From Ylistrum balloti (Eukaryota), in NCBI RefSeq assembly GCF_031769215.1, contig NW_026782034.1:434001-498000 (forward strand): DNA of 64,000 nt, in the 5' to 3' direction. The notes beneath the pieces are model-generated. The model had not been told where the DNA came from. It saw only the letters and a list, made by a program, of their open reading frames with translations, and ran no database searches. A program made the position numbers and the translations under genes. Below are positions 4,301 through 63,697 of this stretch, one piece after another (positions within the stretch are counted from its first letter, which is position 1; each line of letters begins with the position of its first letter).

Positions 4301-5235
4301 AGTCTTCTTGTCCTAGGAATGTCTTTTTGCCCAATAATAAGTCTTCATGTCCCAGGAATGTCTTTTTGCCCAATAGTAAGTCTAGTTGTCAAGGAATGTG
4401 TTTTTGCCCAATATTGAGTCTACTTGTCCCAGGAATGTCTTTTTGCCCAATAGTAAGTCTTCTTGTCTCAGGAATGTGTTTTTGTCCAATAGTGAGTCTA
4501 GTTGTCCCAGGAATGTGTTTTTGCCCAGTAGTAATTCTAGTTGTCCAGGAATGTGTTTTTGCCCAATAGTAAGTCTAGTTGTCTCAAGAATGTGTTTTTG
4601 TCCAATATTGAGTCTACTTGTCCCAGGAATGTGTTTTTGCCCCATAGTGAGTCTAGTTGTCCAGGAATGTGTTTTTGCCCAATAGTGAGCCTAGTTGTCC
4701 CAGGAATGTCTTTTTGCCCAATGGTAAGTCTTGTTGTCCCAGGAAAGTGTTTTTGTCCAATAGTGAGTCTAGTTGTTCCAGAAATGTCTTTCTGCCAAAA
4801 TAGTAAGTCTTGTTGTCCCAGGAATGTCTTTTTGTCCAATAGTAAGTCTAGTTGTCCTAGGAATGTTTTTTTTGCCGAATGGTAAGTCTCCTTGTCAAGG
4901 AATATGTTTTCGCCCAATAATGAGTCTAAATGTCCCAGGAATGTGTTTTTGCCCACTAGTAAGTCTTCTTGTCCTAGGAATGTCTTTTTGCCCAATAGTA
5001 AGTCTAATTGTCCTAGGAATTTTTTTTGCCCAATAGTAAGTCTAGTTGTACCAGGAATGTGTTTTTGCCCAATAGTAAGTCTTGTTGTCCCAGGAATGTG
5101 TTTTTGTCCAACAGAGAATCTTGCTGTTCCAGGAATATCATTTTGCCAAATAGTAAGTCTTGTTGTTGTCCAGGAATATGTTTTTGCCAAAAAGTGAGTC
5201 TAGTTGTCCAAGAAATGTCTCTTTGCTCAATAGTG
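1375..5235. repeat. 38/39-bp minisatellite, about 100 copies, with higher-order blocks
   Basis: Unit gtc(c)caggaatgt(g/c)tttttgcccaatagt(g/a)agtctagtt, degenerating at both edges. It explains all MSRNVFLP... ORFs. Confidence 0.97.
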
Positions 5236-14500: not shown

Positions 14501-17500
14501 CTTTGAAGGGTACAGTTACACCTGCTCACTTTTAAGTCAGTTTTATTGTTTTAAGGTTTTACTGTTTTCGGAAATTTTATGTGTGTGTTCTAGTGTGTGT
14601 AAGGAAGATGGGGTTAGATTCTACATTATCAACACTCAGAATCTACAGTTTAGAAATGTCTTCAAAGATCATCTAAAGAAATTCTAAGTGTAAAACCAAT
14701 GAGAACCTGCAACAGCCAGAGTAGGTGAACACCAGCCAAACACTGGAGACAAAGTCAGTGTTTGATAACTCAAAATTACTGTAAAATTAAATCAAGTTTA
14801 CATAAACTCTAATTAATAGTCTGACACAGACATGGTACTCTCTTGTAATACTACACGTGTTTAAGGTCATGATTCAAGGCCACTTACTCTCTTGTAATAC
14901 TACACGTGTTTAAGGTCATGATTCAAGGCCACTTACTCTCTTGTAATATTACACATGTTAAAGGTCATGATTCAAGGCCACTTACTCTCTTGTAATACTA
15001 CACATGTTAAACGTCATGATTCAAGGCCACTTACTCTCTTGTAATACTACACGTATTTAAGGTCATGATTCAAGGCCACTTACTCTCTTGTAATACTACA
15101 CATGTTAAACGTCATGATTCAAGGCCACTTACTCTCTCTCTTAAGGTCATGATTCAAGGCCACTTACTCTCTTGTAATACTACACGTATTTAAGGTCATG
15201 ATTCAAGGCCACTTACTCTCTTGTAATACTACACGTATTTAAGGTCATGATTCAAGGCCACTTACTCTCTTGTAATACTACACATGTTAAACGTCATGAT
15301 TCAAGGCCACTTACTCTCTTGTAATACTACACGTATTTAAGGTTATAATTCAAGGCCACTTACTCTCTTGTAATACTACACGTATTTAAGGTCATGATTC
15401 AAGGCCACTTACTCTCTTGTAATACTACACATATTTAAGGTCATGATTCAAGGCCACTTACTCTCTTGTAATACTGTACGAAGTTACAATGTCTGTATTT
15501 CAAGATTACTCATTCCTTATAATACTACAATTTTTAAAAGTTGTTATTCAGAGTCACTAACTCTCTTGTAATACTTCACTTACTTAATCTCTTGTCATAT
15601 TACAAGTTTTCAAAAATTGTTACCATTGATCAGAGTCACTTAATCTCCTATAATCCTACAAGTTTTACAAGCTGTAATTTAAGGTTACTTAATCTTGTGT
15701 TATGCTACTGGTTTTAAAACCTGTAATTCAGTCACTTACTCTCTTGTAATACTACAAGTTTTAAAACCTGTAATTCAAGGTTACTTAATCTCTCGTCATA
15801 TTAAGTTTTAAATGCCGTACTTCCGTGCTCTAGATCATGCATCCTACAAATTCTCTTATTATTAACTTACCCTCATATCCTCTAAGTGAGTCTGGACACA
15901 TTCTGCCCGGGCATTCTGATCAGCACCTTGGACAGAAAAGCTCCCAATGTACTGAAATAACAATAAAAACCTCACATCACTACAGAATTCTTAATATTGT
16001 TTTAGTATACCAGTGATGTGCTAAACATAGTATTTGTTTATATGGGATATTTATATATAATAGAGCTCTCCCTTAATTCTACATATATATTTATTGGACA
16101 CAAGTTAGTGTATTTTCCAGATTATCAGTCACTGCTTTTTTCCTCTGCAGTCAGATGAGAGGCTTATATACCAGTGCAGCTTATACACCAGTGCATCTTA
16201 TATTTGGACGAAAATAAAACCAGCAGAATGAAAAAATAAATAAAAAATGGAACATATCATCTGGACATCAGTTCCAGACTGTTATCTATTTTGGGACAAC
16301 CAATTTGTCACCTGCACTATTTACCTGCGTGACCTAGCACCTTGATAATTTTAGTTGTAACATGTCACGCTTTAAGTTAGGATATAAAATAGTGATTAAA
16401 AACAAGCATACAAGTACAACAGCAAGAGTACAAGTACCTGTCTATCACATGTTTGTGACTGAAACCGAATGTCTAGAACTGTCATTTCCTACCATGATGA
16501 TTTTAAGATTGAAATAAAGATAACGTTCTCATGGATTTAATTAATCAAGCCCTTAAATATGAATCACAATAACATCTTCTGAACTTTCGTAATTGCTTTG
16601 GAAGCCAAAGTAGAAGTTTACAATAGCATGTTGCATCCTGGGCTTGAAAGGTCATCAGATCAAATTCTGGAACGACTGCCATGCTTGTTTACGATAAGAA
16701 TGGCTTCATGTGACTTACAAGAAATAATAAGTGACTGTAAAAATTTTGTCAGCATGCAAGGGCCTTCGCTTATATTTAACAGTACAGACACTGATGGAGA
16801 TATCAAGTAAACCATACATTACGTCAGGCCCTATATCTGTGCATAGAAGGCTCCCAAGCAAAACAAGTTCGATAATTGCTATTTTACTTTTTTGAAACAC
16901 ATCAATAAAATGAAGGATCATTGATGAATAATTCATTTGCAAACTTATATAAAATGTTTCAATGACGATCTTGATAAATTGCCTTCCGTTGTCGGTTACA
17001 TCAACAAACTTTGGTCAACATAACGGCTACCACATCGTAGAAAGAAAGGGGCTTATATTTTGGTGCCTCTTATATGTGGATTTAATCAAAAACCTACTAA
17101 AAACCAGTCCTGCATCATATACTCAGGTGTGGTTTATAGCCCAGAAAATATAATACATTTTTTTCATATTTTTCCCCAACCACTGCACCAACCAAGCATC
17201 TCTACAGCATTGATTTCTAATACGTCCGATGTATCTTCACTGCTATCCAGCAGCTATATTTACCGGGTATATTTATTTCTGAATCATATAACTTCCTTCT
17301 TGTACCTTTAAGTCATCCATAGGTTTCAACTTAAATAATTAGCTCACATGTCCGCAATATTTCGGGGATGAAGCTCAACTACATTTGTGAAAAAATATAA
17401 CCTTGACCAATATCATACATATCATATGGGTAAAAATCTATAAAATACTCAAAGACTTCTGATCACCCAGAGGCCCTGAAATCAAGAAATATGCAAGGCC

Positions 17501-20500: not shown

Positions 20501-23500
20501 TTTTTCTGTATGTCTTCGACGGCAATATTAGAAGATAATGAAGCAGTGGTTGTATGGCGAGGGTTAAATTTTGCACAATCTACATTCTAGTAGATTTAGA
20601 GAAAATTAGATCTACGTTTCCATTTAGCGTAACTACCCCTGTTTGCTTGGAATGTTATATATATGAGTGCAAATGAAATTTGTGTGCATATCTCCCTCCC
20701 TGATTAACTGTGGAGGCTGGAGTCTTGTCTCACCAGTCTGTCATGCTCCATAGCCTGGTAGATGTGTACTACTGGTAAAATCTAATATCAAGTTGTATTA
20801 GTGTTTTACTGTCATCAACTTCACACTCTTTTCCTATTACTCTCATTGGAGACACAATAAATCAATGACTTCAAATCAATTTCGGGATGTGACCTTATCT
20901 AGACAAACTATAATTAGTTATAAGTTACTGAACTGATCCAAACTATTTTATCTCAGGAAGATCTATAGTAGTCCTCAATAGAATTATTGGACTTGGGAGT
21001 AAAGATTCTCACAAGATCGAAGATTCAGATTCATCGCAAGTACTGTAAATGTTGTTAATTTAAGAAAGATTCTATTTTCGCGATTTCAGAGCTACAAAAA
21101 ATTCACGTGAAGAAAGATAATTGATAATAAAATTGAAAATTGAATCTTAAATATGTTAAATGATTTGAGTAAAAAAGCAATCCTTTTTTTCTTTAAGCTT
21201 TTGGTTTAACTGTGAAAATATGATCCAACAAAAACAAAAGTAACTCTTATACTCTTATATTACTAATGTATAATGTAGACAACAGTTACATCACTGTTGT
21301 ATAACACATGTAGACAACAGTTACATCACTGTTGTATAACACATGTAGACAACAGTTACGTCACTGTTGTATAACACATGTAGACAACTGTTACATCACT
21401 GTTGTATAACACATGTAGACAACTGTTACATCACTGTTGTATAACACATGTAGACAATTGTTACATCACTGTTGTATAACACATGTAGACAACGGTTACA
21501 TCACTGTTGTATAACACATGTAGACAACGGTTACATCACTGTTGTATAACATATGTAAATAACTGCTAACTAGTTGTATTTTGTGCTTTTTCTACTGACT
21601 GTTACCATAGCGATATTAAATCCCCTACACATATTACAAACTATACCGTAAGACACTGACAATAAACTAATTTACAGTGAAATAGCTTAGGTACAACATA
21701 TCTACTCAATTTGTCTACGTCATTTATATATGACATAATTAGCCAACAGTATGTTATTAGTACAATGAGCATTCCAAGTGGCAGCCATTCACCGAGGACT
21801 CTCATATACCATGAAGACCACACAGATGAAAGCTATTTACTAATACTGTTTACATTTCATCAATTATCAGTTTAAACATATGAAAATTATCTGATATGCA
21901 GGCATGTTAATTCTTCTCTAGATGTATCTATACAAGTGATTTCAATCAAAAATTTATATTGCCGAGAATGTAGGGATAGATAATATATTTAAATAGTGTC
22001 TATCTTTCCCTTGTGTAAATTGGTCCTGAAATAATGTTGGGCATGCTCCAACAAAGATATGTATGTAAAGCTAGGAGTAGAAAGGTTCTATCACCATCAA
22101 CACAAAGAGATGATACGCTAACAATTACGTTGAAATGTGGATGACTTCCCCCAAACCTCCTTAATTCAATGAGAAAAGAGGATCAAATACCGTTATTCTT
22201 CTTCCAAGCTGATTAGTTTCTTGACCGTAAGGTTGACCACTAAGGGTGTTTGACCTACTGGACAAAGACAGTCTTACTCCCTTGCGTCTAGTGCTTAACG
22301 TCCTTTGTTAGAGTTTGTGTGTTATTGTGTAAACTCATTGATCGCTTAGTCATCTTAGAATCTGTCCCCAGTCAGTTTACGTCAGTCACGTCCGATAGCT
22401 CTCCCTGCACTGTTGTAATCACCATCACAAATATGGTTGTTTCTAAACAAGATTAAAGAAAACTCTGATGAAGCAACTACATGAATTTCATCAGTAAGGA
22501 TCTTCTTCAACAGACATTCAAAAAGCTTATAATATCCATTTTTCATACATAAATTTGTCGCAGTATCACTCTACTACTTAATCAATAAAGTTAAAAGAAT
22601 TGAAGACATCATCACCGTTAACAAGCTGTGTATACAGGTTTACTGGCATCAGAATATGGCTGTTGTTGTAACAACTTCAAACTTGTGCCCACTTTGTCTG
22701 TTCTATATGTGGGTATTTTGTGATTGGTTTCCATCAGATTCTCTTCCCAAATGTGTGTACTAGCCGCTCTACAATCTATACACATAACATGATAAGTGAG
22801 ATGTGATATTTTCATGAGAACAAAAAAAGTGCCCTCATAACAATGAATGTAATGTTACAATTACTGCTATCAATTCATCTCTCTCTTCTCTCAACTCCGA
22901 TACTCAGCCGCCATTCCTCATATCCACAATAGAATTGGTTATCAGTTTGACAATGCTGATACTTGACAAACACATAGGGGTACAATATCATTTACACAGA
23001 AGTTACCATATCACCTGTAAATAGTAAATAGAGACATCAATTCCATCTTTGGATCTTGTAACTATTTTGCTATCACAGCATTGTGAGTGGTGTATCAGTG
23101 GGACTGGGACAATCATTCCAGTATTTACGGTAACTTCAGAATTCAACAGGTGAGTGGTGTAACAGTGGGACTGGGACAATCACTTCAGATATAACAGGTG
23201 AGTGGTGTAACAGTGGGACTGGGACAATCATTCAAGTATTTACTGTAACTTCAGAATTCAACAGGTGAGTGGTGTAACAGTGGGACTGGGACAATCATTC
23301 CAGTATTTACGGTAACTTCAGATATAACAGGTGAGTGGTGTAACAGTGGGACTGGGACAATCATTCAAGTATTTACTGTAACTTCAGAATTCAACAGGCG
23401 AGTGGTGTAACAGTGGGACAGGAACATTCATTCAAGTATTTACTGTAACTTCAGAATTTAACAGGCAAGTGGTGTAACAGTGGGACAGGAACATTCATTC

Positions 23501-26500
23501 AAGTATTTACTGTAACTTCAGAATTCAACAGGTGAGTAGTGTAACAGTGGGACAGGAACATTCATTCAAGTATTTACGGTAACTTCAGAATTCAACAGGT
23601 GAGTAGTGTATCTGTGGGACTGGGACAATCATTCAACAGGTGAGTGGTGTAACAGTGGGACAGGAACATTCATTCAAGTATTAACGGTAACTTCAGAATT
23701 CAACAGGTGAGTGGTGTAACAGTGGGACAGGAACATTCATTCAAGTATTTACGGTAACTTCAGAATTCAACAGGTGAGTAGTGTAACAGTGATTTGATTC
23801 CTTCAGGGCATTTCCTAGTATGCTGAATTGTATATGTTGTGTCTTGTTTAACTCATACAATACGCATCACATAGTCTACATAGGTTAGTGTAAATTTAAG
23901 ACTTCAATACCGAAACATGAAATAATTTTTTGAAATCAAAAGAATTGAAATCAAATATAAAGTCATTACAACGTCTTGCTGGTAATTTATATTTGCTATT
24001 ATTTTCAAATTGTAATCAAGCCATGAAAGGTAAAAAAATTTTTTCTAAATTTGTGAACGGACAGAGAAAAACAACACATTGACTGGTTAGTGCCCAGACA
24101 GGAACCAAACCGTCTCTGGCATGAAAATTCCAAAGCTATTGAGCCAAAGAAGCATGCTCTGTCAGCTGAGTGACAGAGATTGTATTTATTTAATACTTGG
24201 AAGTCACACTGACCCGCTCCATTTACAAATTATTGAGCAAAACCACCAACTGTTGAATAAAGATCTAGAGCACAATGACCTCTAATACATGTATTGAACT
24301 CTATACCAAACTCACAGGTAAGAGGACAGCCATTTATTTTATGAATCAGACCTGATAATGAGTCTGACCATGCCTTCTAGTCCGATCTGAAAAATATCCT
24401 ATCAATAAATATGTTTAAAATGTTTGTTTCCTGGGTTTTTCATATTAGACCATCCTTATAAATCTTTATGACAACTCCAAAAGAAATGAAAATGAAATTT
24501 AAAAATACAGATAATTCATATACATCTAATTTGAAAATAAGAAACATTTCAGCTAACCAATTTCCCCAGTGTTACAACTATTTCTATACTTATTTTTTAC
24601 AAATATAGCTCCCCATGTTGTACAAACATGATGTCTGTTACAACCGCTTTCACCCATCCATCATAGTTTCTCCGTCACATCAATATTTATAATGCCCTTA
24701 TAATCACAGAGCTGCTGACTATGAAATTCTACCATTTATTTTGTAACTTCATCCATAATACATTTGGTCCAATAGTTTCTCTCTGATATAGGAGGGGAGA
24801 AGATTTATAGATTTGTTAATAATAGTTATAAAAATGTCTATGATACAAATGTATCGAACCATAACAGAGGCACTGATGCCGACTGATCTGTGTTTACAGG
24901 AACACTTACAGAAAACAAGACAAAGGACGTTATTGGGGAAGAAACTCTGAGATCATAATCTCTAACATAACATGGCAGAGAAATATCTGCAGCCATCTTT
25001 CATTTATAGTCTCTTTTCATCCTTGTTATCTTACTTATATTTCATTAATTATAATAAATAACTGAAGTGTAAAAATATACATATTGAAATAATGGATATC
25101 AAAACAAACAAGTTAATTATCAATTCTATTGTACACTGTGTTATTTACTGAAATTTTCTGAAATGAATAAGTATAATGAATTTCATGACGACACTACATA
25201 AGTATTAGTTTTTTATCTCTATGTTGCTAATATGATGTCTTTAACTTTAATGCACCTAAATACCTAAAAGTATAAATAGATAGGTTTTACATGTGTGTTG
25301 ATGTAATATGGGATTAACCTAACAAGTTCAATAATTTGATTTGTCACTTAAAGGCTCTTGGCTTATTAAATCATTTAACTTGTTAAATACATTTCATTTT
25401 ACATTGACACAAATTTAAGATTCTATTTATCATATAACCCAAATTTTTAAAAGATAAGCAAAAACTCTTATAAATTTGCCTACACGAATGGCTTGGTTCC
25501 ACTTACAGATATCCTTTTTCACTATCAAGACAACCAAGTGACGTCATAAAAGATATGACTTATTTATGACGTTACAACAGTGGTATAAACATGTGTCTTA
25601 TGACATTGCCACATGATATGACATAACAGGTCAGAAATGTGATAGATACGCTGTACCTAATGTAAAGGATTTACGTGACATGTAACCATTTATCAGTAGT
25701 CACTAATTTATGATACAATAACTTTTACTATAAACACATGTTAACTGTCATCTGGTTGCTGTGTGATATGTTATTATTATTTGCAGACAACACATGTCTG
25801 TCTACCATTCTAAAACAAGCACAGTACTCCCTAAAGGACAGAAAACTATCAATGCGTAAAACCTTAATTCAATTGGCTCTATAACCATCTTTACATATTG
25901 TACGGATGTTCCTGGCTGAAAAACCGATCTCGAGGGAACCTGATCTATCGCATTCGGGCTGAACAAATTCGGCATCTTCTCCTACATCCGTAAAGTTATT
26001 TAAGGTTTCTCTTTAATTAAAATTATATGCTTTTGTGTTAATCCTGCAATAACTCCAGGAGGCCAACACAATTCCTCTGAGTCAAAGTCATGGGCTTATT
26101 ACAGGACAATAATGCAAGGGTGCCAACATATTACTTCTGAGTTAAAATCTGGGTCTGGGCTTATCACATGACGATAAGCCCAGGGCCTAACACATTACTT
26201 CTGAGTCAGTTCAGGGGTTGGGCTTATTACAAGACAATAATCATAGGGGACCAACACAATACTCCTGGGACTTGGATTATCACAGGAAAATAAGCCCAGG
26301 TACCAACACATTACTCCTGGGACTGGGATTATCACAGGAAAATAAGCCCAGGTACCAACACATTACTCCTGGGACTGGGATTATCACAGGAAAATAAACC
26401 CAGGTACCAACACATTACTCCTGGGACTGGGATTATCACAGGAAAATAAGCCCAGGTACCAACACAATACTCCTGGGACTGGGATTATCACAGGAAAATA

Positions 26501-32500: not shown

Positions 32501-35500
32501 GATTACTGAGGTGGTATCTAAAACAAGAATTAATACTATGAGTTAAAATAAAACTTATCATTAAAAAATTGTTTCAAGTGTCAATGTAATCAGAATATGA
32601 TGTCTATGAAAATGTTGGGGCTGACTGAGTTTTATCATTAGTAGTTCTCAATTCCAGACAGAAATTATCAATTATGGCAGTCACCAATTAGTTGTCTACA
32701 TAAATAAAATTGGCCTTATTTTTCTTTTTGGTTTGAAACAGTGACCTAACTGTAGCCTGTAACAGGGCAATGGGTGTTACACAAAATGTAAGTAAGGACT
32801 GATCTATAATAATAAAACTTTATTTATTTTACAACAATTGCGAAACAAGTTTTTCAAACTTATATTAATCACTCTTGTTGGCTCAGATGGAAGCACACGA
32901 GGGGTCTTAGTGTGGAAGGAAACCAGAGTCCACGGGGAAAACCAACATGGTCGGGCAGGTGACACTATATCTTTTCACATCCATTCCAGGAATCAATCCC
33001 AAACGAACACCCAACTGATCTGAGACACTGACCTAGGTTCGAGGTCACATGACAATGGGTGTTGCACAAAATGTAAGTAAGGACTGGTCAGAGATACTGA
33101 CCTAGGTTAGAGGACACATGACAATGGGTGTTGCACAAAATGTAAGTAAGGACTGGTCAGAGATACTGACCTAGGTTAGAGGACACATGACAATGGGTGT
33201 TGCACAAAATGTATGTAAGGACTGATCTGAGACATTGACCTAGTTTAGAGGACACATGACAATGGGTGTTGCACAAAATGTAAGTAAGGACTGATCTGAG
33301 ACATTGACCTAGTTTAGAGGACACATGACAATGGGTGTTGCACAAAATGTAAGTAAGGACTGGTCAGAGACACTGACCTAGGTTAGAGGACACATGACAA
33401 TGGGTGTTGCACAAAATGTAAGTAAGGACTGATCTGAGACATTGACCTAGTTTAGAGGTCACATGACCATGGGTGTTGCACAAAATGTAAGTAAGGACTG
33501 GTCAGAGACATTGACCTAGGTTAGAGGACACATGACAATGGGTGTTGCACAAAATGTAAGTAAGGACTGATCTGAGACACTGACCTAGTTTAGAGGACAC
33601 ATGACAATGGGTGTTGCACAAAATGTAAGTAAGGACTGATCTGAGACACTGACTAGTTTAGAGGACACATGACAATGGGTGTTGCACAAAATGTAAGTAA
33701 GGACTGATCTGAGACATTGACCTAGGTTAGAGGACACATGACAATGGGTGTTGCACAAAATGTAAGTAAGGACTGATCTGAGACACTGACCTAGTTTAGA
33801 GGACACATGACAATGGGTGTTGCACAAAATGTAAGTAAGGACTGATCAGAGACACTGACCTAGTTTAGAGGACACATGACAATGGGTGTTGCACAAAATG
33901 TGTAAGACTGATCTGAGACACTGACCTAGTTTAGGACAATGGGTGTTGCACAAAACTGATCTGAGACACTGACTAGTTTAGAGGACACATGACAATGGGT
34001 GTTGCACAAAATGTAAGTAAGGACTGATCTGAGACAGGTTTAGAGGACACATGACAATGGGTGTTGCACAAAATGTAAGTAAGGACTGATCTGAGACACT
34101 GACCTAGTTTAGAGGACACATGACAATGGGTGTTGCACAAAATGTAAGTAAGGACTGATCTGAGACACTGACCTAGTTTAGAGGACACATGACAATGGGT
34201 GTTGCACAAAATGTAAGTAAGGACTGAGACACTGACCTAGTTTAGAGGACACATGACAATGGGTGTTGCACAAAATGTAAGTAAGGACTGATCTGAGACA
34301 CTGACCTAGTTTAGAGGACACATGACAATGGGTGTTGCACAAAATGTAAGTAAGGACTGATCTGAGACATTGACCTAGTTTAGAGGACACATGACAATGG
34401 GTGTTGCACAAAATGTAAGTAAGGACTGATCTGAGACATTGACCTAGTTTAGAGGACACATGACAATGGGTGTTGCACAAAATGTAAGTAAGGACTGATC
34501 TGAGACATTGACCTAGTTTAGAGGACACATGACAATGGGTGTTGCACAAAATGTAAGTAAGGACTGATCTGAGACATTGACCTAGTTTAGAGGACACATG
34601 ACAATGGGTGTTGCACAAAATGTAAGTAAGGACTGATCTGAGACATTGACCTAGTTTAGAGGACACATGACAATGGGTGTTGCACAAAATGTAAGTAAGG
34701 ACTGATCTGAGACATTGACCTAGTTTAGAGGACACATGACAATGGGTGTTGCACAAAATGTAAGTAAGGACTGATCTGAGACATTGACCTAGTTTAGAGG
34801 ACACATGACAATGGGTGTTGCACAAAATGTAAGTAAGGACTGATCTGAGACATTGACCTAGTTTAGAGGACACATGACAATGGGTGTTGCACAAAATGTA
34901 AGTAAGGACTGATCTGAGACATTGACCTAGTTTAGAGGACACATGACAATGGTTGTTGCACAAAATGTAAGTAAGGACTGATCTGAGACACTGACATAGT
35001 TTAGAGGACACATGACAATGGGTGTTGCACAAAATGTAAGTAAGGACTGATCTGAGACATTGACCTAGGTTAGAGGACACATGACAATGGGTGTTGCACA
35101 AAATGTAAGTAAGGACTGATCAGAGACACTGACCTAGTTTAGAGGACACATGACAATGGGTGTTGCACAAAATGTAAGTAAGGACTGATCAGAGACACTG
35201 ACCTAGTTTAGAGGACACATGACAATGGGTGTTGCACAAAATGTAAGTAAGGACTGATCTGAGACACTGACCTAGTTTAGAGGACACATGACAATGGGTG
35301 TTGCACAAAATGTAAGTAAGGACTGATCTGAGACACTGACCTAGTTTAGAGGACACATGACAATGGGTGTTGCACAAAATGTAAGTAAGGACTGATCTGA
35401 GACATTGACCTGGGCTTACAAGTAGATACAAGACCTTGGCATTATATCATCACCTCTCAGGTCTAGACTGAAACCCAAACTCCTGGTCAGACATGGACTA

Positions 35501-48714: not shown

Positions 48715-49750
48715 CCTATCATCCACTTCATCATTCCCTTACCTCTCCTTCATCACTCTTTTTCTCCACTTCATCACTTCCTTTCTCCCCTTCATCACTC
48801 CATTTTCACCCTTTCGTCACTCATTTTTCCCCCTCTTCCCTCCCCATCATCACACCCCTTTACCGCCCTTTCCTCCCCTTCATTACTGCATTTCCTCCCC
48901 TTCATCACCCCATTTTCTCCCCTTCATCACCCCATTTTCTCCCCTTCATCAACCCCTTTCCTCCCCTTCATCACTCTATTTCCTCCCATTCATCGACCCT
49001 TTTCCCCACTTTCCTCTCCTTCATCACCCCCTTTCCTCTCCTTTTCTCCCCTTCATCACCCCCTTTCCTCTCCTTTTCTCCCCTTCATCACCCCCTTTCC
49101 TCTCCTTCATCACCCCCTTTTCTCCCCTTCATCACCCCCTTTCCTCTCCTTCATCACCCCCTTTTCTCCCTTTCATCACCCCCTTTCCTCTCCTTCATCA
49201 CCCCCTTTCCTCTCCTTTACCACATCTTTCCTCTTCTTCATCACCCCATTTTCTCCCTTCATCATCCCCTTTCCTCTCCTTTACCACCTCTTTCCTCTTC
49301 TTCATCACCCCCTTTTCTCCCTTTCATCACCCCCTTTCCTCTCCTTCATCACCCCCTTTCCTCTCCTTTACCACATCTTTCCTCTTCTTCATCACCCCAT
49401 TTTCTCCCTTCATCATCCCCTTTCCTCTCCTTTACCACCTCTTTCCTCTTCTTCATCACCCCCTTTTCTCCCTTCATCCCATTTCCTCTCCTTTACCACC
49501 TCTTTCCTCTTCTTCATCACCCCCTTTCCTCTCCTTTTCTCCCTTTCATCACCCCTTTCCTCTCCTTTTCTCCCCTTCATCACCCCCTTTCCTCTCCTTC
49601 AACACCCCCTTTTCTCTCCTTCAACACCCCCTTTTCTCCCCTTCATCACCCCCTTTCCTCTCCTTCAACACCCCCTTTTCTCTCCTTCAACACCCCCTTT
49701 TCTCCCCTTCATCACCCCCTTTCCTCTCCTTCACCATTCCCTTTCTTCCT
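48715..49750. repeat. pyrimidine-rich degenerate ~22-bp repeat
   Basis: Core cttcatcaccccctttcctctc; the + strand is almost G-free. It explains the 358-aa P/F/S/L/H ORF. Confidence 0.92.
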
Positions 49751-52522: not shown

Positions 52523-52695
52523 TCATACTCGCTCATACAGATACAGGTAAGCCAGATCTCGAGGCGGGTTCTCAGACAGTGCCACCTTTTCATCATTAAA
52601 TATCACCCAGCGACCATCTTTACGGATGTGACACACGTAATGGCCGACCATTGTAGATGTACCCATGTGACTAATGAACGCTTTCAGGCGGTATT
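52523..52695 (-). CDS. USP5: USP5 last coding exon, (K)[25 protein letters not shown]...LYERV*
   Basis: Acceptor ttgtttccacag, phase 1, TGA at 52523-52525. Confidence 0.95.
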
Positions 52696-55600
52696 CTGTG
52701 GAAACAATAGAAACAACTTTAAGTATAAATTTAATTTAGTTTAGGTTAAGTATTTCAATTATACACACATATCTTAACCTACATTACCATTCTGTTATAA
52801 GTTCTTAACCTACACAACTATTCTGTTAGAAGTTCTTAACCTACATAACTATTCTGTTATAAGTTCTTAACCTACATAACTGTTCTGTCAGAAGTTCTTA
52901 ACCTACATAACTATTCCGTTATAAGTTCTTAACCTACACAACTATTCTGTTAGAAGTTCTTAACCTAAATAACTATATTGTTATAAGTTATACAGAAGCT
53001 TTCACATATATATTAAGACCATTAGAGCGATGAAACCATTTATTATGATATCCCACTAGTTATAATTTTTCTGTGTATAAATATTCCCTCTATAAAAAAC
53101 CCAACTCTATCCTGATATTTTCCCATATTTCATATCAGTTAGGATATTTTCTTCTGCTCAGAAATGATTTTTGAAAGCTTGTAATTTCCAGGCTTGTGTC
53201 AATATTAGACATGTTGGCCTTTCATTGTGACACCAATTATCCACTAAATAGTTTTAGCCAGTCCAAACTGTATAGGGTATATTACAAACGCCCCAGGCCT
53301 GTAAACAACTAAGTACTTCAATTTATCATACAACAAACTTAACCAACATTAAAGAAACACAGAAGTATAAGTATATACCACTAAGTTGTACGATATTTTA
53401 AAACTGAACACAAAGAAAACCTGTCACACACAATAGTATCACTGTGCACTTATTAGGAAAGTAGGTGTTTATGACTAGTATACTCAGAGCTTATCCTACA
53501 TACTTTCTCGTCCGTCCCTGAAGGCAGGCTGTGATGGGCCAGCACCTGCACCTGCTGGCTCTTCAGTTTCCATGGGAGTATTTAGTTCATCAACATGGCT
53601 AAAGATCCAGTCAGCAGCTCGTTCCACATTGTTATCCTAATGAACATAAAATATTCATAAGCTTATGTAAAGTTCTGGTGAGAATCATATGATTTCTCAT
53701 TTTTATTACAAGCAAATGCTAAGAGATATAAATTTATAGAAAATATCTGATTTCTTTAAAATACAAACTACTATTTTCCACTGTCTATATATCACAGAAG
53801 TCAAAATTCAACAAAGAAATTGTTCAAATTCATGTTTCCAGATTTCATGTCCTTGTTAAATTAAGAAAAGAAAAGTGATATGCACAACTAATGTCTCAAG
53901 GTTACCTTAAAGTTGGTGACATGTTTTGTATGGTACAGGTCAGCTGATCAAAACCAAGGTAGCTCCCTTATATTCCTGACATTACCTATGACATTCAGGA
54001 CCACTTACTATGGCAGAGAGTGACATTTACTGTGACCTTGAGTGTTACATACTGTGACATTGAGCTTTTCATACAGTGACCTTGAGTGTTACATACTGTG
54101 ACCTCGAGTGTTACATACTGTGACCTTGAGTGTTACATACCGTGACATTGAGCTTTACATAATGTGACCTTGAATGTTACATACTGTGACCTTGAGTGTT
54201 ACAAACTGTGACCTTGCAATTTCAATATTGTGGCCTGGAGTGACATTATTTTGACCTTGAGTGTCATTTCTGGTGACCTTACATATCTTACCGTGGCCTT
54301 GAGTGCCTTAATAGCCTGGTCTCTAGTGAATCCCATGGACATAATCATGACAAGACTATCCTCATTTGGTATAAAGTCTTTGGCTGCTCCTTTCTTCACT
54401 CCGGGTGGCGTGAACGGACTGGAGAAATCTGGAGTTAGACATAAAGATTAAGAGGTCATCACTACAAAGGAATGATTTGATTTATACTATCTTACGTCAT
54501 TAAAGGAAGATCTTCATGTGTATGCAAGGTGAGTGTGTGTGTTGAATGCATGTTTTTGTGAGATGTTCGTGTAAGCCTCTTTTGTGACAGTGTTTAAATG
54601 AAGGTGACTTTATAGTGCAACCACACTGAAGTATACCATGAAATGCCATTAATTTAATTAGTCTAGATTCATATTTTTTTTATTTCATTCAATAAATACA
54701 TCTCAAGAGTGCAAGGTTGTAGTATAAAAATTCAGTTTTGATAGATTTTGCCTGCTCCTTTTCATGGTACATAATTCTCACTCTTGTTTAAATCTTTCTT
54801 TGTGTTCACATCAGTGTCTTACATTTAATCACACTGACCTGTGTATCCTATGTGTTCACACTTACCTGGATCTCCCATATGTTCCATGACCCAATTCATG
54901 GCAGCCTCTGCTCCACTGTTGTTAGTGTTGAACACTGCTCGTTTACAGCCCTCTAGAGGAAACCCCATATCCATGAGTTGGGCCACCACTGCCTCATCAA
55001 TCTCTATAACTACAGAAAACAATCTGATCTACACTGGATGTTTTATAAGGCAGAAGTATAATGCAGATTTCACTGCTATACAACTATATATAATAGATAA
55101 TATTTAGAAACTGACACACTATGAACATTATGAACTTTGTAACATACAAAGTTAGGGATGGACAGAGTGTAAAACCTATAGTCTCTTTAGTAGTGCCAGC
55201 TCCTTACTAATAAAAATAAAATACAACCTTTCAAAATATCATAGGACCATGTAAATCATAGGAAAACTATATCTTAAAGCTATAATGACGACAATAATTT
55301 CTAATCAAATCTATATGTAGTAACAATGGTTTAGATAGTTACTTCAGTATGCAACTTTGTTGAAGAACTAATAATATCAGTAAAATGTTGAGAAACTGCA
55401 GTAAAGTAAGGTCTATTGTATATCTGTAGGGATAACAGACAGGAAACACTATTTCATAGCTGGGATCACAAGGATGTTTGCTTTAAAGCAGATAACAAAT
55501 GTAGTTTACCAGGGGTTGAATCATCCTGTTCCTGTGGTAGCTCCTCCTCTCCTGGCTGCAGGCCACACCCCCTTAATGACGCTAAATCTATTTCCTCGGG

Positions 55601-58600
55601 CACATCTATAGAAACATCTGTAAGAGAGTGTATAAATCATAGGCTTGTTTTTCATGTCATTCTGCTGACCTTTTTTAAGGTCACCTGAAGGCATTTATCT
55701 TCCTGGGCTGGTCACACCAATATCATGATTCCTTACTTAGGTCAGTAATACAAATTATATTCCCTAATAAGGTCAAGTCAATGCCATATTTCATAATTCA
55801 AGTTTAGATTAAACCATGTTTCCTAATTTAACACTGAATGAAGGTCACGATTCCTACGTCTGATTGCTGGTTATCACTGCCTGTGTTGTTCGTGTTACGT
55901 ACCAAGCTTTTTAGGAACCCAGTCCTCCCCAACTGTAAATTTCTTAAGCTGTACCATCAAATAATCGGGAAATGAAGAAAGACGTGTGGTTCTGAAAATG
56001 AAATAGGATTCTCAGTCTTCGAAGTAGCATCTTCAAACAATATATTTTTTCAAGGGTTATGGTAATAGGAATTTGTCTTATCATAATAAACTGCATACCT
56101 TTTCTACTAATTGCATTTAATTCACTTCAATGTTGATGTGAGGGTTACAGAGAACTAATTACAATGTATCTCTAAGGGATCAAAGAAACATTTCTGTCAA
56201 AACCTTAAGCAGTGTAAAATGTTTTTTTATTTCTTACTTCCTTGCTGTACATTTTCCTTTCAGTGCAGAACTGTAAAAGTCATCAACAATTTCTTCAGCT
56301 TGGAAACAATGTAGGCAAGCAGACAAAGGAATTCTGGGTCGCACAAGCTCTTTAGGATCCCTGTCATTAATAAATGTTAAATTCATTAAGTCTAAGCAGT
56401 TATTTTTTTATTTTTGATCAGAAATTAAATATACACCTTCTAAGAACCATGCTTTTCCCTTATTCATTTAAATCATTGTTTTTAATTGTTTTCGATTCTC
56501 TTTTATCAATACATTAAATAAAAGACCTGCTAAAAATCCTGATAAGACTGTAGACTTCAGAAATAAAAGAACTTGAACTTAATCTGTCTAATTTTTAATA
56601 AGCATTTGATATATGTACAGATGTAAATCAAAATAATTTTTAATCATTACATTAAAAAAAGTATTACATAAACTTTTAAAACACCCTCGTTTAATGTGAC
56701 ACAATAAATAGACACCAAAGTAACAATTAGACTTACATTCTTTTTCCTTCTGCTTCTACTTCCTTCTTCTTTGCTTCATACTGTTTCACCTCATCTGTTA
56801 ACAAACAGTTACACATCATCACATACTGTGTCACCTCATCTGTTAACAAACAGTTACACATCATCACATACTGTTTCACCTCATCTGTTAACAAACAGTT
56901 ACACATTATCACATACTGTGTCACCTCATCTGTTAACAAACAGTTACACATCATCACATACTGTGTCACCTCATCTGTTAACAAACAGTTACACATCATC
57001 ACATACTGTGTCACCTCATCTGTTAACAAACAGTTACACATCATCACATACTGTGTCACCTCATCTGTTAACAAACAGTTACACATCATCACATACTGTG
57101 TCACCTCATCTGTTAACAAACAGTTACACATCATCACATACTGTGTCACCTCATCTGTTAACAAACAGTTACACATCATCACATACTGTGTCACCTCATC
57201 TGTTAACAAACAGTTACACATCATCACATACTGTGTCACCTCATCTGTTAACAAACAGTTACACATCATCACATACTGTGTCACCTCATCTGTTAACAAA
57301 CAGTTACACATCATCACATACTGTGTCACCTCATCTGTTAACAAACAGTTACACATCATCACATACTGTGTCACCTCATCTGTTAACAAACAGTTACACA
57401 TCATCACATACTGTGTCACTCATGTTACACATCATCACATAACATCTGTTCACCTCATCTGTGTTCTGTTAACAAACAGTTACACATCATCACATACTGT
57501 GTCACCTCATCTGTTAACAAACAGTTACACATCATCACATACTGTGTCACCTCATCTGTTAACAAACAGTTACACATCATCACATACTGTGTCACCTCAT
57601 CTGTTAACAAACAGTTACACATCATCACATACTGTGTCACCTCATCTGTTAACAAACAGTTACACATCATCACATACTGTGTCACCTCATCTGTTAACAA
57701 ACAGTTACACATCATCACATACTGTGTCACCTCATCTGTTAACAAACAGTTACACATCATCACATACTGTGTCACCTCATCTGTTAACAAACAGTTACAC
57801 ATCATCACATACTGTGTCACCTCATCTGTTAACAAACAGTTACACATCATCACATACTGTGTCACCTCATCTGTTAACAAACAGTTACACATCATCACAT
57901 ACTGTTTCACCTCATCTGTTAACAAACAGTTACACATCATCACATACTGTGTCACCTCATCTGTTAACAATTCAAACAGTTACACATCATCACATACTGT
58001 GTCACCTCATCTGTTAACAAACAGTTACACATCATCACATACTGTGTCACCTCATCTGTTAACAAACAGTTACACATCATCACATACTGTGTCACCTCAT
58101 CTGTTAACAAACAGTTACACATCATCACATACTGTGTCACCTCATCTGTTAACAAACAGTTACACATCATCACATACTGTGTCACCTCATCTGTTAACAA
58201 ACAGTTACACATCATCACATACTGTGTCACCTCATCTGTTAACAAACAGTTACACATCATCATCTGTTAACACATACTGTGTCACCTCATCTGTTAACAA
58301 ACAGTTACACATCATCACATACTGTGTCACCTCATCTGTTCACAAACAGTTACACATCATCACATACTGTGTCACCTCATCTGTTAACAAACAGTTACAC
58401 ATCATCACATACTGTGTCACCTCATCTGTTAACAAACAGTTACACATCATCACATACTGTGTCACCTCATCTGTTAACAAACAGTTACACATCATCACAT
58501 ACTGTGTCACCTCATCTGTTAACAAACAGTTACACATCATCACATACTGTGTCACCTCATCTGTTAACAATTCAAACAGTTACACATCATCACATACTGT

Positions 58601-61600
58601 TTCACCTCATCTGTTAACAAACAGTTACACATCATCACATACTGTGTCACCTCATCTGTTAACAAACAGTTACACATCATCACATACTGTGTCACCTCAT
58701 CTGTTAACAAACAGTTACACATCATCACATACTGTGTCACCTCATCTAACAAACAGTTACACATCATCACCTCATCTGTTAACAAACATACACATCAACA
58801 CATCATCACATACTGTGTCACCTCATCTGTTAACAAACAGTTACACATCATCACATACTGTGTCACCTCATCTGTTAACAATTCAAACAGTTACACATCA
58901 TCACATACTGTGTCACCTCATCTGTTAACAATTCAAACAGTTACAACAAACAGTTACACATCATCACATACTGTGTCACCTCATCTGTTAACAAACAGTT
59001 ACACATCATCACATACTGTGTCACCTCATCTGTTAACAAACAGTTACACATCATCACATACTGTGTCACCTCATCTGTTAACAAACAGTTACACATCATC
59101 ACATACTGTGTCACCTCATCTGTTAACAAACAGTTACACATCATCACATACTGTGTCACCTCATCTGTTAACAAACAGTTACACATCATCACATACTGTG
59201 TCACCTCATCTGTTAACAAACAGTTACACATCATCACATACTGTGTCACCTCATCTGTTAACAAACAGTTACACATCATCACATACTGTTCATCTGTTAA
59301 CACCTCATCTGTTAACAATTCAAACAGTTACACATCATCACATACTGTGTCACCTCATCTGTTAACAAACAGTTACACATCATCACATACTGTGTCACCT
59401 CATCTGTTAACAAACAGTTACACATCATCACATACTGTGTCACCTCATCTGTTAACAAACAGTTACACATCATCACATACTGTGTCACCTAATCTGTTAA
59501 CAAACAGTTACACATCATCACATACAAACAAAACAGCCTTTTTAAATGTTTTTATGGCAAACTATAACAAATTAACTATTTACACATTTATTAAAATTGG
59601 ATAGAACACTAAAATCAGTAACCACACTGAACATACATCCTTAGGTCAGCTGAAGTTTGATTCCTGCTCATTTCACTTTATAAATAAAATGTTAACCAAA
59701 TCAGAAGATTTACCATTATGCAGTGAATGGTGACCCACAACATTTAGATGAAAACATGACAAATATGACATGACAAGAATGGAGAAGTGATCCTTGACAT
59801 ACACCGTCTCACCTTCATGATATATGATACACACCTTTGTTATTGGCAGCCTCCACAGGTACAGGTAGTGCCAGACAATAGTCACACCTGTTCGTATATT
59901 TCACTTTATGACTCTGCATACATTCTACTCTCTCCTCCACTTGGAACTTCATACTTCCTGTTGGATTGACCTGCCCCCCAGTATTTCTCTGAAAAATGCA
60001 CATTTTCTAAAATAGACACCTCAGGTATTTCTAAACAAGCCCTTCGTTGCTGGAATGCAACAAACTCAGATTTAACTATATGATTTATATATGCTTTCTC
60101 AGCAAAGGTAGTGTCCACCTGTGCAGGATTGAATGGCGTAAGTACAAATGTATTTGATTGGAGTTGTTATTGTTTTGTTGTTTTGATGAATAAACAGTTA
60201 AAAGAAAAAGTAGAAATTTCTTTATTTCTGTTTAATTACTGCCATTTCATATAACAGATTAAATATATATGCGTGCGTGCGTGTGTGTGTGCATGTGCAT
60301 GTGTAATGTTTATAACTGTCTATATGTATTCAAGATATAGTACAGCAGAATCGCCATTGTACCTCATATCTACACATATTTTGACAGTTGGTAACCAGGT
60401 TTACAAAAAGATACAGAATAAGTGATAAACAAAGCCTCTGACTGGTCCATCAGTAACATAAACGTTTACCTCTGTGAGGTTTAAGACCAGAACATGCATC
60501 ACATGCATATCATCATGAATTGATAGGTATTACTTCTCATTACAGTAAGTATAAATCTATTGCCTTTTCATTCCAATGAAAACTAACATCTCTGCTGATT
60601 TCCTCCAATGAAAAGGGAGAACACAGATCATCTTATCATGTTTACCAATCAAAAAGACTGATACAAATACATGTATTCAAATATTTTTCTTTTATGTAGC
60701 TAATATTTTAGTATTTTACTACTTAATCATGCAAGAAACAGAAACATTAAACACACTTGTGAAGCACATTTTTTGTTACTGAAGACTCTGATAAATCATA
60801 CATATACTAACCTCAATAAGGTTTATTAAATGCAAGAGGAATTCTTGTGCATCCTGTTGACGTTTGGTAGAAAACTCTGGATGGCCTTGTCCAATAAGTG
60901 TTTTAAACATCTGTGGACGTACACCTGTTGGTGGCTGTAAATCATATAAACAGTAATTCATTTCTATAGGTTTTAATGTCACAGGTTTTAAATAGTTTCA
61001 TGTGTATTACATCAAATGGTAATGTACTTCTGTAGCCTTTCAGGTTTTAAGTTGTAAGTAATCCTGTCCATTTCTTTGTTGTTGGATTGTTCATCCATGT
61101 AGTCTAACATCATTTTCATCTATTCATCATAAAAAACATTTCCTATTCATAGTAACAGTGACCTTGGCCATTGACCTTTGGATATGAAAAGCAATACCAA
61201 GCAAGCACTTATGATAAGGAAGCACTGTATGAAGTTTGAGTCTGATTGTCTATATTGAACTCAATTTATTGCTAAAAACCTTTGTGCGGACCATGGCGCT
61301 GACATAGTTATACCTGTATGTCGCCTTTGGCAGGTGACACAAAAAACAGGTGTTCAAAAGTGTATGAGAAATGTTAGCATGGTCTCTAACGTTCGATACA
61401 TGTAGTTTGACAATACAATTGACATAACAAGACAATGCCATTTTTATATCTGTCGCTTCACTTTCTATGCTGTTATCTGGTAAAAATTGCTTACAAAACT
61501 GTTTTCTGATCCCAAATTAAAGAGATCCCGAAATGTAGAGGGAAGAAATTTAATGAAAACCAACCTATACAAGATACACTTCAGTACCTAGAGAGCAATG

Positions 61601-63697
61601 TCCTGATTAGGGGCAGTGATCAGTGGAAAATACTTATAATCATGTTTTTTTCTTTCCAAATTTCTTTTTTATAAATGAAGTGATGAAAATCAGTAGATAT
61701 CAGTTGGTACTTATATAAACACTGATTTCTCCGCAGAAAAATGTGAAAAAATGCTAATGATCAGATGAGATATAAGGATAGTACCATGCAGTTGAAGATT
61801 TCCTTCACACAAAATAAGCCATAGTATTATGCACTTTTAAATAGTATTAGGTAAGTATTGATGAGTATTTTATGAAAGGTCTGAAAGCTACTTACCAGTA
61901 TGTTTTCACTGACATCCTCTGGTGGCGGTTTAGAGTACTCTCCACTGTTAAGGCCGAGTCCTAACTTGGCCCTAAAAATACCAATAATAAACATACCACA
62001 TACTATATATACAAGCACCGTGGTCTAGTGGTAGGACATTGCGATAGTGATGGAATGGTCACTAGTTAATTTCTGACATGGATACCTTGCTGTATCTGAG
62101 GACAATATACTTTTATTCTAGATTTGTTACAGAGGACTCAACTGTAATATTGTCTACAAGACATTAGTGCCTAATGGCAGCTCTGGCTGTATACTCCCCA
62201 GAGAAGATTACGTCTAGTAGCAAGAGCAAGCTGTCAACCAAGTCTTCTTCAAAATACAGGAGGAATATAGGAATATTTTTTCAACAGATCTAGGAGTTTT
62301 TTGCTAGTTTTGAGGCAAAATAGTGGAGTTTTCCAAACGAAAATCCTTTCAATCAAAGTCATTTATACTAACAATTCTTATGCATAGCAAATCATAATCT
62401 GAATGGGCACCTAAAAGGCCAATAACATGTTGTACTGCCTTACAAGGTGCCCATACAGGTGATAAAGAGATGCACTGAATCATGTTCTGGTGGCTGGTGA
62501 TGCTGGTGATGCTGTTACTTACAAATTCTCTAACTTGTAAAATAAAGAAGCCAAAAGCAGTATCAAAGAAATGTTTACAATCTCTACATTTATTGGTGAA
62601 AAAATTCCTGAAAAATATAGGAATACTTTTCAAAAAATAGGAAAATATACTAAATAAAGGTCTTTGAACCAAAGTATAGGAAAATATAGTAATAAAGGAA
62701 TTGGTTGACAGCCTGCAAATGGTCTGATAACCATGGACATTAATGGTAATTTGTGAACTATTTTGAGATAGCCTTGTTACTGTAATAAAGAGGTATGTAA
62801 AACCTTGTTATCTATAGAGTTCCTTACTTTTGAATGAATGCAAATATGCGTGCTGAGTTTAGTATTGTCTTTGGTCTATTTTTTATTAAGCTACTGAAAC
62901 CATTAAGGGAATGCTATACTAACATATACATGAGTTTACCATAGTACTGGAGGGATTACTCACATCTGTACTACAAAGTCGCTGGATGGGTCCTCTGAGG
63001 CACACTGGAAAATGTCTACAGCATTGTCACAGTACCTGTGGAACACAATAATAAGGCTTTTATTTCTCAGCTATAAAGGGAAAATCTCAAACAAACAAAC
63101 AATAAACTACCACTTCTTCTGTAACCCATATCTACACAATAACCATTTCTCTGTATCATGATCCATCTATATAAAACAACTCCCATCCTTTGTACAAAAA
63201 ACTTCTGCAATTAAACAACCCCTTTCTTTGTACACGAACCCACCTCTATAAAACAACCCCTCCCTCTGTGCAAAACCCACCGTAATACAACATGCCCTTA
63301 TTCTAGACACAAACCCATCTAAATAAAACAACCCTTCCTTTGAACAACCCACTTATATACAACTTCTCCCTTCTGGAGAATAACCCACTTTTATACCAAA
63401 ACATTTTCCTCTGAACAACAACCCACCTCTCTACAAAGCTCCTCTCTCCATATGACAACCCCTTCCTCTCTTCGACAACTATTTCCTCTCTGGAACAACC
63501 TACCTCTGTACAAAGTCTGGTATGGTGAATAGAACCTGCATCACAGAGTTCATGTAGCAACTGTTACCAAGGTTACGCATGCCTGTGTATCCTGGACCAT
63601 ACAATGGAGTTAGCTTGCTTCCAGCTTCCTGGATTACGTCCCACTCTCCAATCTTCTGGTTCAAATCAATTTCCATCTCTACCATTGTCTTGTCTGT
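52523..63697 (-). CDS. USP5: ubiquitin carboxyl-terminal hydrolase 5/13 (isopeptidase T), 13 C-terminal exons; 5' exons lie beyond the window
   Basis: Spliced translation contains [16 protein letters not shown] (Cys box), [28 protein letters not shown], two UBA domains ([22 protein letters not shown]) and [16 protein letters not shown]...WVIFNDEKV (His box). All borders are GT-AG with consistent phases. Invertebrates usually have a single USP5/13 orthologue. Confidence 0.96.
52768..52990. repeat. 31-bp minisatellite, about 7 copies
   Basis: aacctacataactattctgtta(t/g)aagttctt. Confidence 0.9.
53504..53636 (-). CDS. USP5: USP5 exon, 133 nt, [14 protein letters not shown]...FRDGRE
   Basis: Acceptor tttatgttcattag, donor A|gtatgt; end of UBA2. 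Confidence 0.93.
54010..54306 (-). repeat. 22-bp minisatellite derived from an exon end plus 5' splice site, about 13 copies
   Basis: Sense unit acactcaaggtcaca|gtatgta versus authentic gcactcaaggccacg|gtaagat. Confidence 0.85.
54292..54428 (-). CDS. USP5: USP5 exon, 137 nt, (D)FSSPFTPPG...QAIKALKAT
   Basis: Acceptor ctttatgtctaactccag, donor ACG|gtaaga; start of UBA2. Confidence 0.93.
54866..55009 (-). CDS. USP5: USP5 exon, 144 nt, UBA1 (V)[17 protein letters not shown]...EHMGDP
   Basis: Acceptor gttttctgtag, donor G|gtaagt. Confidence 0.95.
55510..55617 (-). CDS. USP5: USP5 exon, 108 nt, (D)[10 protein letters not shown]...[14 protein letters not shown]
   Basis: Acceptor cactctcttacag, donor G|gtaaac. 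Confidence 0.93.
55903..55991 (-). CDS. USP5: USP5 exon, 89 nt, (K)[29 protein letters not shown]
   Basis: Acceptor cctatttcattttcag, donor G|gtacgt. Confidence 0.95.
56238..56360 (-). CDS. USP5: USP5 exon, 123 nt, (M)[15 protein letters not shown]...KGKCTAR
   Basis: Acceptor catttattaatgacag, donor AA|gtaaga. Confidence 0.93.
56737..56794 (-). CDS. USP5: USP5 exon, 58 nt, (D)[18 protein letters not shown]
   Basis: Acceptor tgtttgttaacag (last unit of the 45-bp array), donor AT|gtaagt. Phases 1 and 2 fit both neighbours; matches the EELLEYEEKK-like helix of USP5. Confidence 0.88.
56778..59523 (-). repeat. 45-bp minisatellite made of the exon's 3' splice site and first bases, about 60 copies
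   Basis: Sense unit gtatgtgatgatgtgtaactgtttgttaacag|atgaggtgacaca. It fills about 90% of the 3040-nt intron 56795-59834. Confidence 0.97.
59835..59988 (-). CDS. USP5: USP5 exon, 154 nt, RNTGGQVNP...VEERVEC...[10 protein letters not shown]
   Basis: Acceptor tgcatttttcag, donor G|gtgtgt. Confidence 0.92.
60812..60934 (-). CDS. USP5: USP5 exon, 123 nt, [11 protein letters not shown]...[16 protein letters not shown]
   Basis: Acceptor tttatatgatttacag, donor GAG|gttagt. Confidence 0.95.
61150..61346 (-). mobile_element. HINE-like element, 5' part
   Basis: Minus strand starts tttttgtgtcacct-gccaa-aggcgaca (terminal hairpin after a T run). Internal gtgaccttggccattgacc motif. Confidence 0.45.
61896..61971 (-). 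CDS. USP5: USP5 exon, 76 nt, (M)[25 protein letters not shown]
   Basis: Acceptor ggtatttttag, donor CTG|gtaagt. Confidence 0.94.
62014..62205 (+). mobile_element. decayed tRNA-derived SINE
   Basis: A-box TGGTCTAGTGG at 62021-62031, B box degraded. The downstream gcctaatggcagctctggctgtatactcccca resembles conserved SINE central domains (from memory). Confidence 0.45.
62964..63035 (-). CDS. USP5: USP5 exon, 72 nt, (R)[23 protein letters not shown]
   Basis: Acceptor tattgtgttccacag, donor AT|gtgagt. Confidence 0.92.
63120..63515 (-). repeat. old 36-40-bp tandem array derived from an exon end plus donor, about 9-10 decayed copies
   Basis: The aaccca(c/t) motif recurs every 36-40 nt. Copy 63417-63438 is 20/22 identical to the junction 63494-63515. 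Confidence 0.7.
63504..63697 (-). CDS. USP5: USP5 exon, 194 nt, [19 protein letters not shown]...[10 protein letters not shown]...PDFVQ (catalytic Cys)
   Basis: Acceptor aaaactttcag (short pyrimidine tract), donor AG|gtaggt. Confidence 0.95.

Follow-up and report, generated by a model that had tools for sequence, protein, structure and literature searches.

Why should minisatellites in the introns of one gene straddle the ends of its exons? The question is raised by a 64,000-nucleotide stretch of the genome of the saucer scallop Ylistrum balloti, a pectinid (RefSeq assembly GCF_031769215.1, contig NW_026782034.1, positions 434,001 to 498,000), hereafter called the window, in which the USP5 gene occupies the minus strand from position 52526 to beyond 64000. 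One exon of this gene matches human USP5 in PDB (3ihp) with E = 1e-10, and the RefSeq protein XP_060066475.1 is the exact translation of 20 GT-AG coding exons on the minus strand of contig L006 of assembly GCA_031769215.1, to which the window is 100% identical over 21,478 bases (window position = 79950 - L006 position); exons 8-20 are inside the window. An initial annotation of the window had claimed that three arrays in the USP5 introns were seeded from exon-intron junctions and that the arrays form an age series. Both claims were borne out: the arrays are copies of exon-intron junctions, with an empirical p <= 1e-4 for each junction, and in total junction duplications affect five of the 19 USP5 introns in Ylistrum.

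The largest of these arrays (Table 1) is found at an acceptor and spans 2.7 kb of intron 12, which is itself 3 kb long. When its units were aligned in register, the 45-bp unit was found to consist of the last 27 nt of intron 12 and the first 18 nt of exon 13, and a full 3' splice site is present in each unit. The first 18 nt of exon 13 thus constitute the terminal partial unit of the array; they match the unit at 17 of 18 positions, and the resulting score of 16 was equalled by none of 12,590 control segments. Furthermore, an exact 19-mer across the acceptor of exon 13 was found in 54 units, and 60 AG sites of the array score like the authentic acceptor when evaluated with a matrix made from 114 real USP5 acceptors. 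The unit corresponds to 15 codons and is open in the frame of exon 13 across the 14 units adjoining the exon, and the copy within exon 13 deviates from the majority unit.

All of the other junction duplications in Ylistrum USP5 are at donors. The first unit of the 22-bp array consists of the last 12 nt of exon 18 and the first 10 nt of intron 18; copies 2-5 beside the exon are decayed, and the remaining copies match the consensus at 18-22 of 22 positions. The junction segment of exon 18 was equalled in its match to the array by 2 of 12,543 controls, and its 14 exon nucleotides alone by 1 of 12,610. Intron 8 (466 bp) is taken up to about 90% by the 35-38-bp array, whose first unit combines the last 10 nt of exon 8 with 25 nt of the intron; none of 17,507 controls matched the array as the junction did. 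We also noticed a shorter duplication with a 27-bp unit (19 nt of exon 17 and 8 intron nt; junction matched by 2 of 17,549 controls), and a fifth one, missed by Tandem Repeats Finder (TRF), in which a single echo of the last ~30 nt of exon 7 and the donor lies about 92 nt downstream (L006:13541-13680, outside the window). As the exon ends are coding sequence conserved in mussel, clam and human, the exon is the source and the array is the copy. In each array, the annotated splice site is the exon-proximal copy, which is the strongest or tied in score, and the pseudo-sites are identical to the real site in the young arrays and weaker in the old ones.

Table 1. Coordinates of the junction arrays, their exons and the features compared with them (window positions unless a contig is given)
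Feature	Position	Strand	Remarks
45-bp minisatellite, 60.1 copies, 90% matches	56777..59525	-	TRF
22-bp minisatellite, ~12-13 copies (TRF x11)	54020..54303	-	TRF; starts contiguously at exon 18, donor 54292
35-38-bp array, ~11 copies, decayed, 66% matches	63090..63513	-	starts at exon 8 donor 63504; TRF 38 bp x5 or more
27-bp x2.4 tandem duplication of exon 17 donor junction	54829..54891	-	TRF; absent from the list of the initial annotation
USP5 coding exon 13	56737..56794	-	exact spliced map; 100% match to XP_060066475.1 residues 487-506
USP5 coding exon 18, second UBA domain	54292..54428	-	exact spliced map
USP5 coding exon 8, catalytic Cys box	63504..63697	-	exact spliced map
USP5 coding exon 17, first UBA domain	54866..55009	-	exact spliced map
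31-bp x7 array in intron 19, 76 nt from acceptor	52772..52989	-	TRF; internal comparison
PID-domain exon of neighbouring SH2D5-like gene	15871..15951	-	
GT[AG]AGT-bearing minisatellites	1377-5235, 14836-15812, 23083-23791, 33014-35411		three antisense to SH2D5-like gene
~155-bp-period family	L003:15463-16945, L004:6627-8132, L005:8880-9506 and 17987-18526; traces L006:5216-5256 and 33102-33129		

The arrays are also real features of the genome. In an independent DNA run from another individual (about 2% differences, i.e., single-nucleotide polymorphisms), contigs lead out of the unique sequence and into the initial copies of both the 22-bp and the 45-bp array, and the words of the 45-bp unit are present at a depth of about 330, as compared with 8.8 for single-copy sequence. 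While the junction arrays are collapsed in these short-read contigs, the contigs span the exon-array borders and arrays are present in the assemblies of other species as well, so that an assembly artefact is not the explanation. The sole length difference seen in the contigs of that individual concerns the 31-bp array in intron 19, which is not a junction array and is exactly 124 bp (4 units) shorter there; the difference is either a copy-number polymorphism or a collapse by the assembler.

How old are these arrays? Exact spliced maps of USP5 were obtained for four scallops (Ylistrum balloti, Pecten maximus, Argopecten irradians and Mizuhopecten yessoensis), one mussel (Mytilus californianus) and one clam (Mercenaria mercenaria), and all six have the identical 20 exons and 19 intron positions. 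The initial annotation had put forward a comparison of orthologous USP5 introns as a means of dating the arrays, and this comparison proved informative. The 45-bp acceptor array has no counterpart in USP5 of Pecten, Argopecten or Mizuhopecten and is hence restricted to Ylistrum among the four scallop genera compared. On the other hand, the 22-bp period and the phase (-12..+10) of the Ylistrum exon-18 array recur unchanged in Pecten (x17) and Mizuhopecten (x1.9), and no such array was found in USP5 of Argopecten, mussel or clam. Likewise, Pecten maximus has an exon-8 array (35 bp x5) whose 35-bp phase (-10..+25) agrees with that in Ylistrum; no array was present after exon 8 in two further relatives of uncertain placement (L001 and L002). 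At the exon 17 junction, Pecten has a 67-bp x10 array with the same start position in the exon as the Ylistrum duplication. Mizuhopecten has young donor arrays of its own in intron 6 (91 bp x9, including 45 exon nt) and intron 11 (21 bp x3), and Argopecten has the same exon structure with none of the Ylistrum junction arrays.

Divergence at four-fold sites between these scallop genera is 0.40-0.49, and the USP5 tree separates Ylistrum, Mizuhopecten and Pecten + Argopecten at the basal scallop split. Since the genera sharing the phase span this split, the exon-18 and exon-8 arrays are either as old as the common ancestor or the outcome of identical re-seeding. In contrast, among the internal arrays with units of <=100 bp at the USP5 loci of the four scallops, none is common to genera. 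The age series is thus real, as supported by both the identity within arrays and the phylogeny: namely, a lineage-specific acceptor array and two donor arrays common to scallop genera.

The shared gene structure also bears on the introns themselves. Rogers-type intron gain proceeds by tandem duplication of an AGGT-containing segment and resembles the present case in its starting mutation (i.e., a tandem duplication copying splice signals), but the duplications in USP5 are inside pre-existing introns and create none. All 19 intron positions are also found in USP5 of Mytilus and Mercenaria; therefore, all of these introns are old, none was made by repeats, and intron gain by tandem duplication was rejected as an origin.

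We then need to consider why junctions are so often involved. In a null model of uniform seeding, where arrays were collapsed to one unit and at least 4 nt were needed on either side of a junction, the number of junction-spanning arrays observed (expected) was 4 (0.58) in Ylistrum, 3 (0.87) in Pecten, 3 (0.51) in Mizuhopecten and 0 (0.20) in Argopecten. In an echo scan independent of TRF, hits were obtained at 8 of the 76 donors and at 1 of the 76 acceptors in scallops, as against 0 of 76 junctions in mussel and clam; donor cases outnumber acceptor cases by about 6-8 to 1. In terms of the background, however, a local tandem echo was detected at 29% of internal intron positions in scallops versus 12% in mussel and clam. 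Tandem duplication is hence very common in scallop introns, and junction arrays are to be expected; with such a high background rate, no mutation process specific to splice sites is needed. Persistence accounts for most of the excess of standing junction arrays.

We therefore favour as the probable explanation a combination of frequent neutral tandem duplication, a splicing filter favouring donors and long persistence, in which a mutational bias at splice sites is unneeded. A short tandem duplication (22-45 bp) would by chance straddle an exon-intron border; the exon-side copy would remain as the working junction, and additional intronic copies would be amplified by slippage or unequal exchange. 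Two filters might then act on the products. First, extra donors downstream of the real donor would be far better tolerated than extra acceptors upstream of the real acceptor: downstream donor copies would be harmless if the first donor wins, as it does in human F7 (see below), while upstream acceptor copies would be riskier. Second, selection acting on both the protein and the splice site would prevent decay of the copy inside the exon. With its founder fixed in this way, a junction array would live long and remain recognisable, whereas internal arrays would drift and vanish.

Several observations weigh against this explanation. Arrays in the same phase in several genera could reflect repeated re-seeding instead of persistence. 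When pooled over the four scallops by the count per species, junction-spanning arrays number 10 against 2.15 expected (4.6-fold, naive P = 1.7e-5), although this count repeats shared arrays and includes the arrays for which USP5 was chosen; some degree of junction preference may thus be at work. Also, the number of independent events behind the donor excess is small (6-7 to 1, two-sided P ~0.07-0.13), and the use of the exon-proximal sites is known at the level of annotation, from the RefSeq model XP_060066475.1 and the conserved 20-exon structure, both of which take the proximal sites.

A more far-reaching alternative is that the junction minisatellites of pectinids represent a distinct, long-lived class of intronic sequence, in which the exon founder would re-seed the array, the phase would be fixed over the divergence of the family (~0.6-0.8 neutral substitutions/site), arrays would build up preferentially at donors and they would become a main determinant of intron length, possibly with an added mutational or selective advantage linked to donors. 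We regard this as doubtful.

Somewhat more readily set aside is the idea that mutation is targeted to junctions; that is, transcribed junctions would raise the rate of tandem duplication through R-loops, a stalled polymerase or the donor consensus as a hotspot of slippage or breakage, with seeding especially at donors. The excess of standing arrays in the four scallops, the five affected introns of Ylistrum and the excess of donors would all be consistent with it, and so would the motif GT[AG]AGT, which is present in the unit of 4 of the 15 minisatellites in the region of the SH2D5-like gene, outside USP5, as compared with 0.64 expected from shuffled units (P = 0.0016). Two arrays are shared by descent, nonetheless, and USP5 was picked because of its arrays; when shared and ascertained arrays are subtracted, three new junction events are left against 1.4-1.9 expected, which is not significant. 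The donor hexamer is absent from all 32 internal arrays of the six USP5 loci, which argues against it as a seeding hotspot, and the borders of the units are 10-45 nt within the exon and not at the splice site. No junction array was found in USP5 of mussel or clam, though the expectation there is only ~0.5. The initial annotation had left the choice between a mutational bias and a retention bias. Retention fits better, given that the arrays are tolerated mainly at donors and persist, unlike internal arrays, while a mutational bias is not required and is, in our view, unlikely.

A selected role in splicing is less probable again. As decoys for U1 or U2AF, the arrays might modulate splicing or shield the pre-mRNA; alternatively, they might serve as stepping stones by which the 3-kb intron 12 is excised in stages, or they might give rise to in-frame isoforms. 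Two arrays have indeed been kept in the same phase since the ancestor of the four genera, the pseudo-sites of young arrays are as strong as the authentic sites, and the sole acceptor array has a unit that is divisible by three and open in the exon frame for 14 units. The chance of an open 15-codon unit with a length divisible by three is ~0.16, however, and no array-derived residues are present in the RefSeq model XP_060066475.1. Argopecten is without these arrays and has an unchanged exon structure, copy number, unit length and sequence vary freely between genera, pseudo-donors are weakened in old arrays, and pseudo-sites are silent in the known cases (PMC1557585, PMC3087553). Two specific forms of array usage were also examined and rejected. 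Recursive-splicing (ratchet) sites would have the form AG/GTRAGT, but AG and GTATGT are 13 nt apart in the 45-bp unit; and the isoforms X1 and X2 of Mizuhopecten do not represent the use of repeated donors, as they differ at the N-terminus instead.

Finally, that the arrays arose by chance resemblance, by assembly artefact or from copies of a dispersed repeat landing beside exons, for which two 10-mers common to unrelated arrays and a 155-bp-period dispersed family in the USP5 introns of other scallops might be cited, is effectively refuted by the control comparisons at each junction, by the contiguity of the arrays with the exons, by their presence in the reads of the independent individual and at the same junctions in other species' assemblies, and by the absence of the shared 10-mers from the rest of the window.

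Concerning these shared words, the 10-mer CACAGTATGT is common to the 45-bp array (56821-59484) and the 22-bp array (54047-54188) and is found nowhere else in the window, and the 10-mer AACAGTTACA is likewise confined to the 45-bp array and a 35-bp array at 21273 (21281-21325). Given about 100 pairs of arrays, both are probably due to chance; CACAGTATGT was not taken as a sign of a single origin of the 45-bp and 22-bp arrays, since the unit of each array aligns with the exon beside it. Apart from these two sharings at chance level, the diagnostic 10-mers are confined to the junction arrays within the 64 kb, by which an origin from a dispersed repeat or a transposon-borne satellite was rejected. 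The ~155-bp-period tandem family, with a unit starting with TTGTTATCGCTATTTCTCAG, is found in differing USP5 introns of Pecten, Argopecten and Mizuhopecten; it is a dispersed satellite, probably borne by a transposon, unlike the local junction arrays.

Some arrays in or near USP5 are not junction-derived. Deep in intron 7 and far from both of its junctions, there is a 27-bp x56 array with 92% matches (L006:14000-15511, outside the window), showing that junctions are not the only places in USP5 where large arrays arise. The 31-bp array in intron 19 has only ACAG/AATA in common with the junction (p = 0.3) and was rejected as junction-derived. A weaker junction case had also been suggested at exon 15871 of the SH2D5-like gene, but this could not be upheld: the exon has only the GTAAGT consensus in common with the 49-bp array at 14836-15812 (p ~0.5). 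The interval separating USP5 from the SH2D5-like gene contains, at 48726-49749, a pyrimidine-rich 22/44-bp array (CCCCCTTTCCTCTCCTTCATCA) with a GC skew of -0.57. In intron 14 of Argopecten USP5 (L004:11366-11695), furthermore, we noticed a 41-bp x8 array, its units 100% identical, that begins at position +2 of the intron; this array is junction-anchored but copies no exon base, and the repeated site is ATAAGA, not GTAAGA.

Junction-spanning minisatellites are an already described kind of repeat. In amphioxus, they are called "mirages" and were found in Adh3, troponin C, the globins BflGb6/9 and PGBD5 (PMC3087553, PMC3902484); they duplicate either border of the exon with regular splicing unaffected, and the units at the border escape homogenisation (PMC3087553), and mirages are also present in further lancelet genes (PMC3902484). 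The scallop arrays resemble mirages in that the units (10-160 bp in mirages) span the 5' or 3' exon-intron border, that many units keep AG/GT, that interior units evolve in concert with the border units excluded (here, in the 22-bp array and in the exon copy of the 45-bp unit), and that their occurrence is not limited to a single species of the group. They differ in that the host is a mollusc and not a cephalochordate, that an array reaches a higher number of copies (60 units, 2.7 kb), that five of the 19 introns of one gene are involved, and that two arrays are traceable to the ancestor of four scallop genera.

In human, intron 7 of F7 has a 37-bp variable number tandem repeat, of which only the most upstream donor is used, and CBS, IFI6-16, LMNB2 and PDGF are listed as similar (PMC1557585). 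In these genes as in USP5, the first monomer spans the exon-donor border and the donor is reiterated downstream in identical or near-identical copies; the most upstream site is used in F7 by experiment and in scallop USP5 at the level of annotation. The human cases are, however, single donor arrays of 5-25 units, to which USP5 adds a 60-unit acceptor array and several arrays per gene. No report of junction minisatellites in scallops was found in the open literature, and USP5 of scallops is a dense case of the mirage type in a new phylum.

For scallops, these arrays provide natural test cases for the choice of splice sites, as 60 equal acceptors follow one another in the 45-bp array and identical donors number up to 10. 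The many perfect decoy sites in scallop introns call for caution in annotators and splice predictors. Junction arrays can, furthermore, outlast ordinary intron sequence, as two of them are common to genera with 40-49% difference at silent sites.

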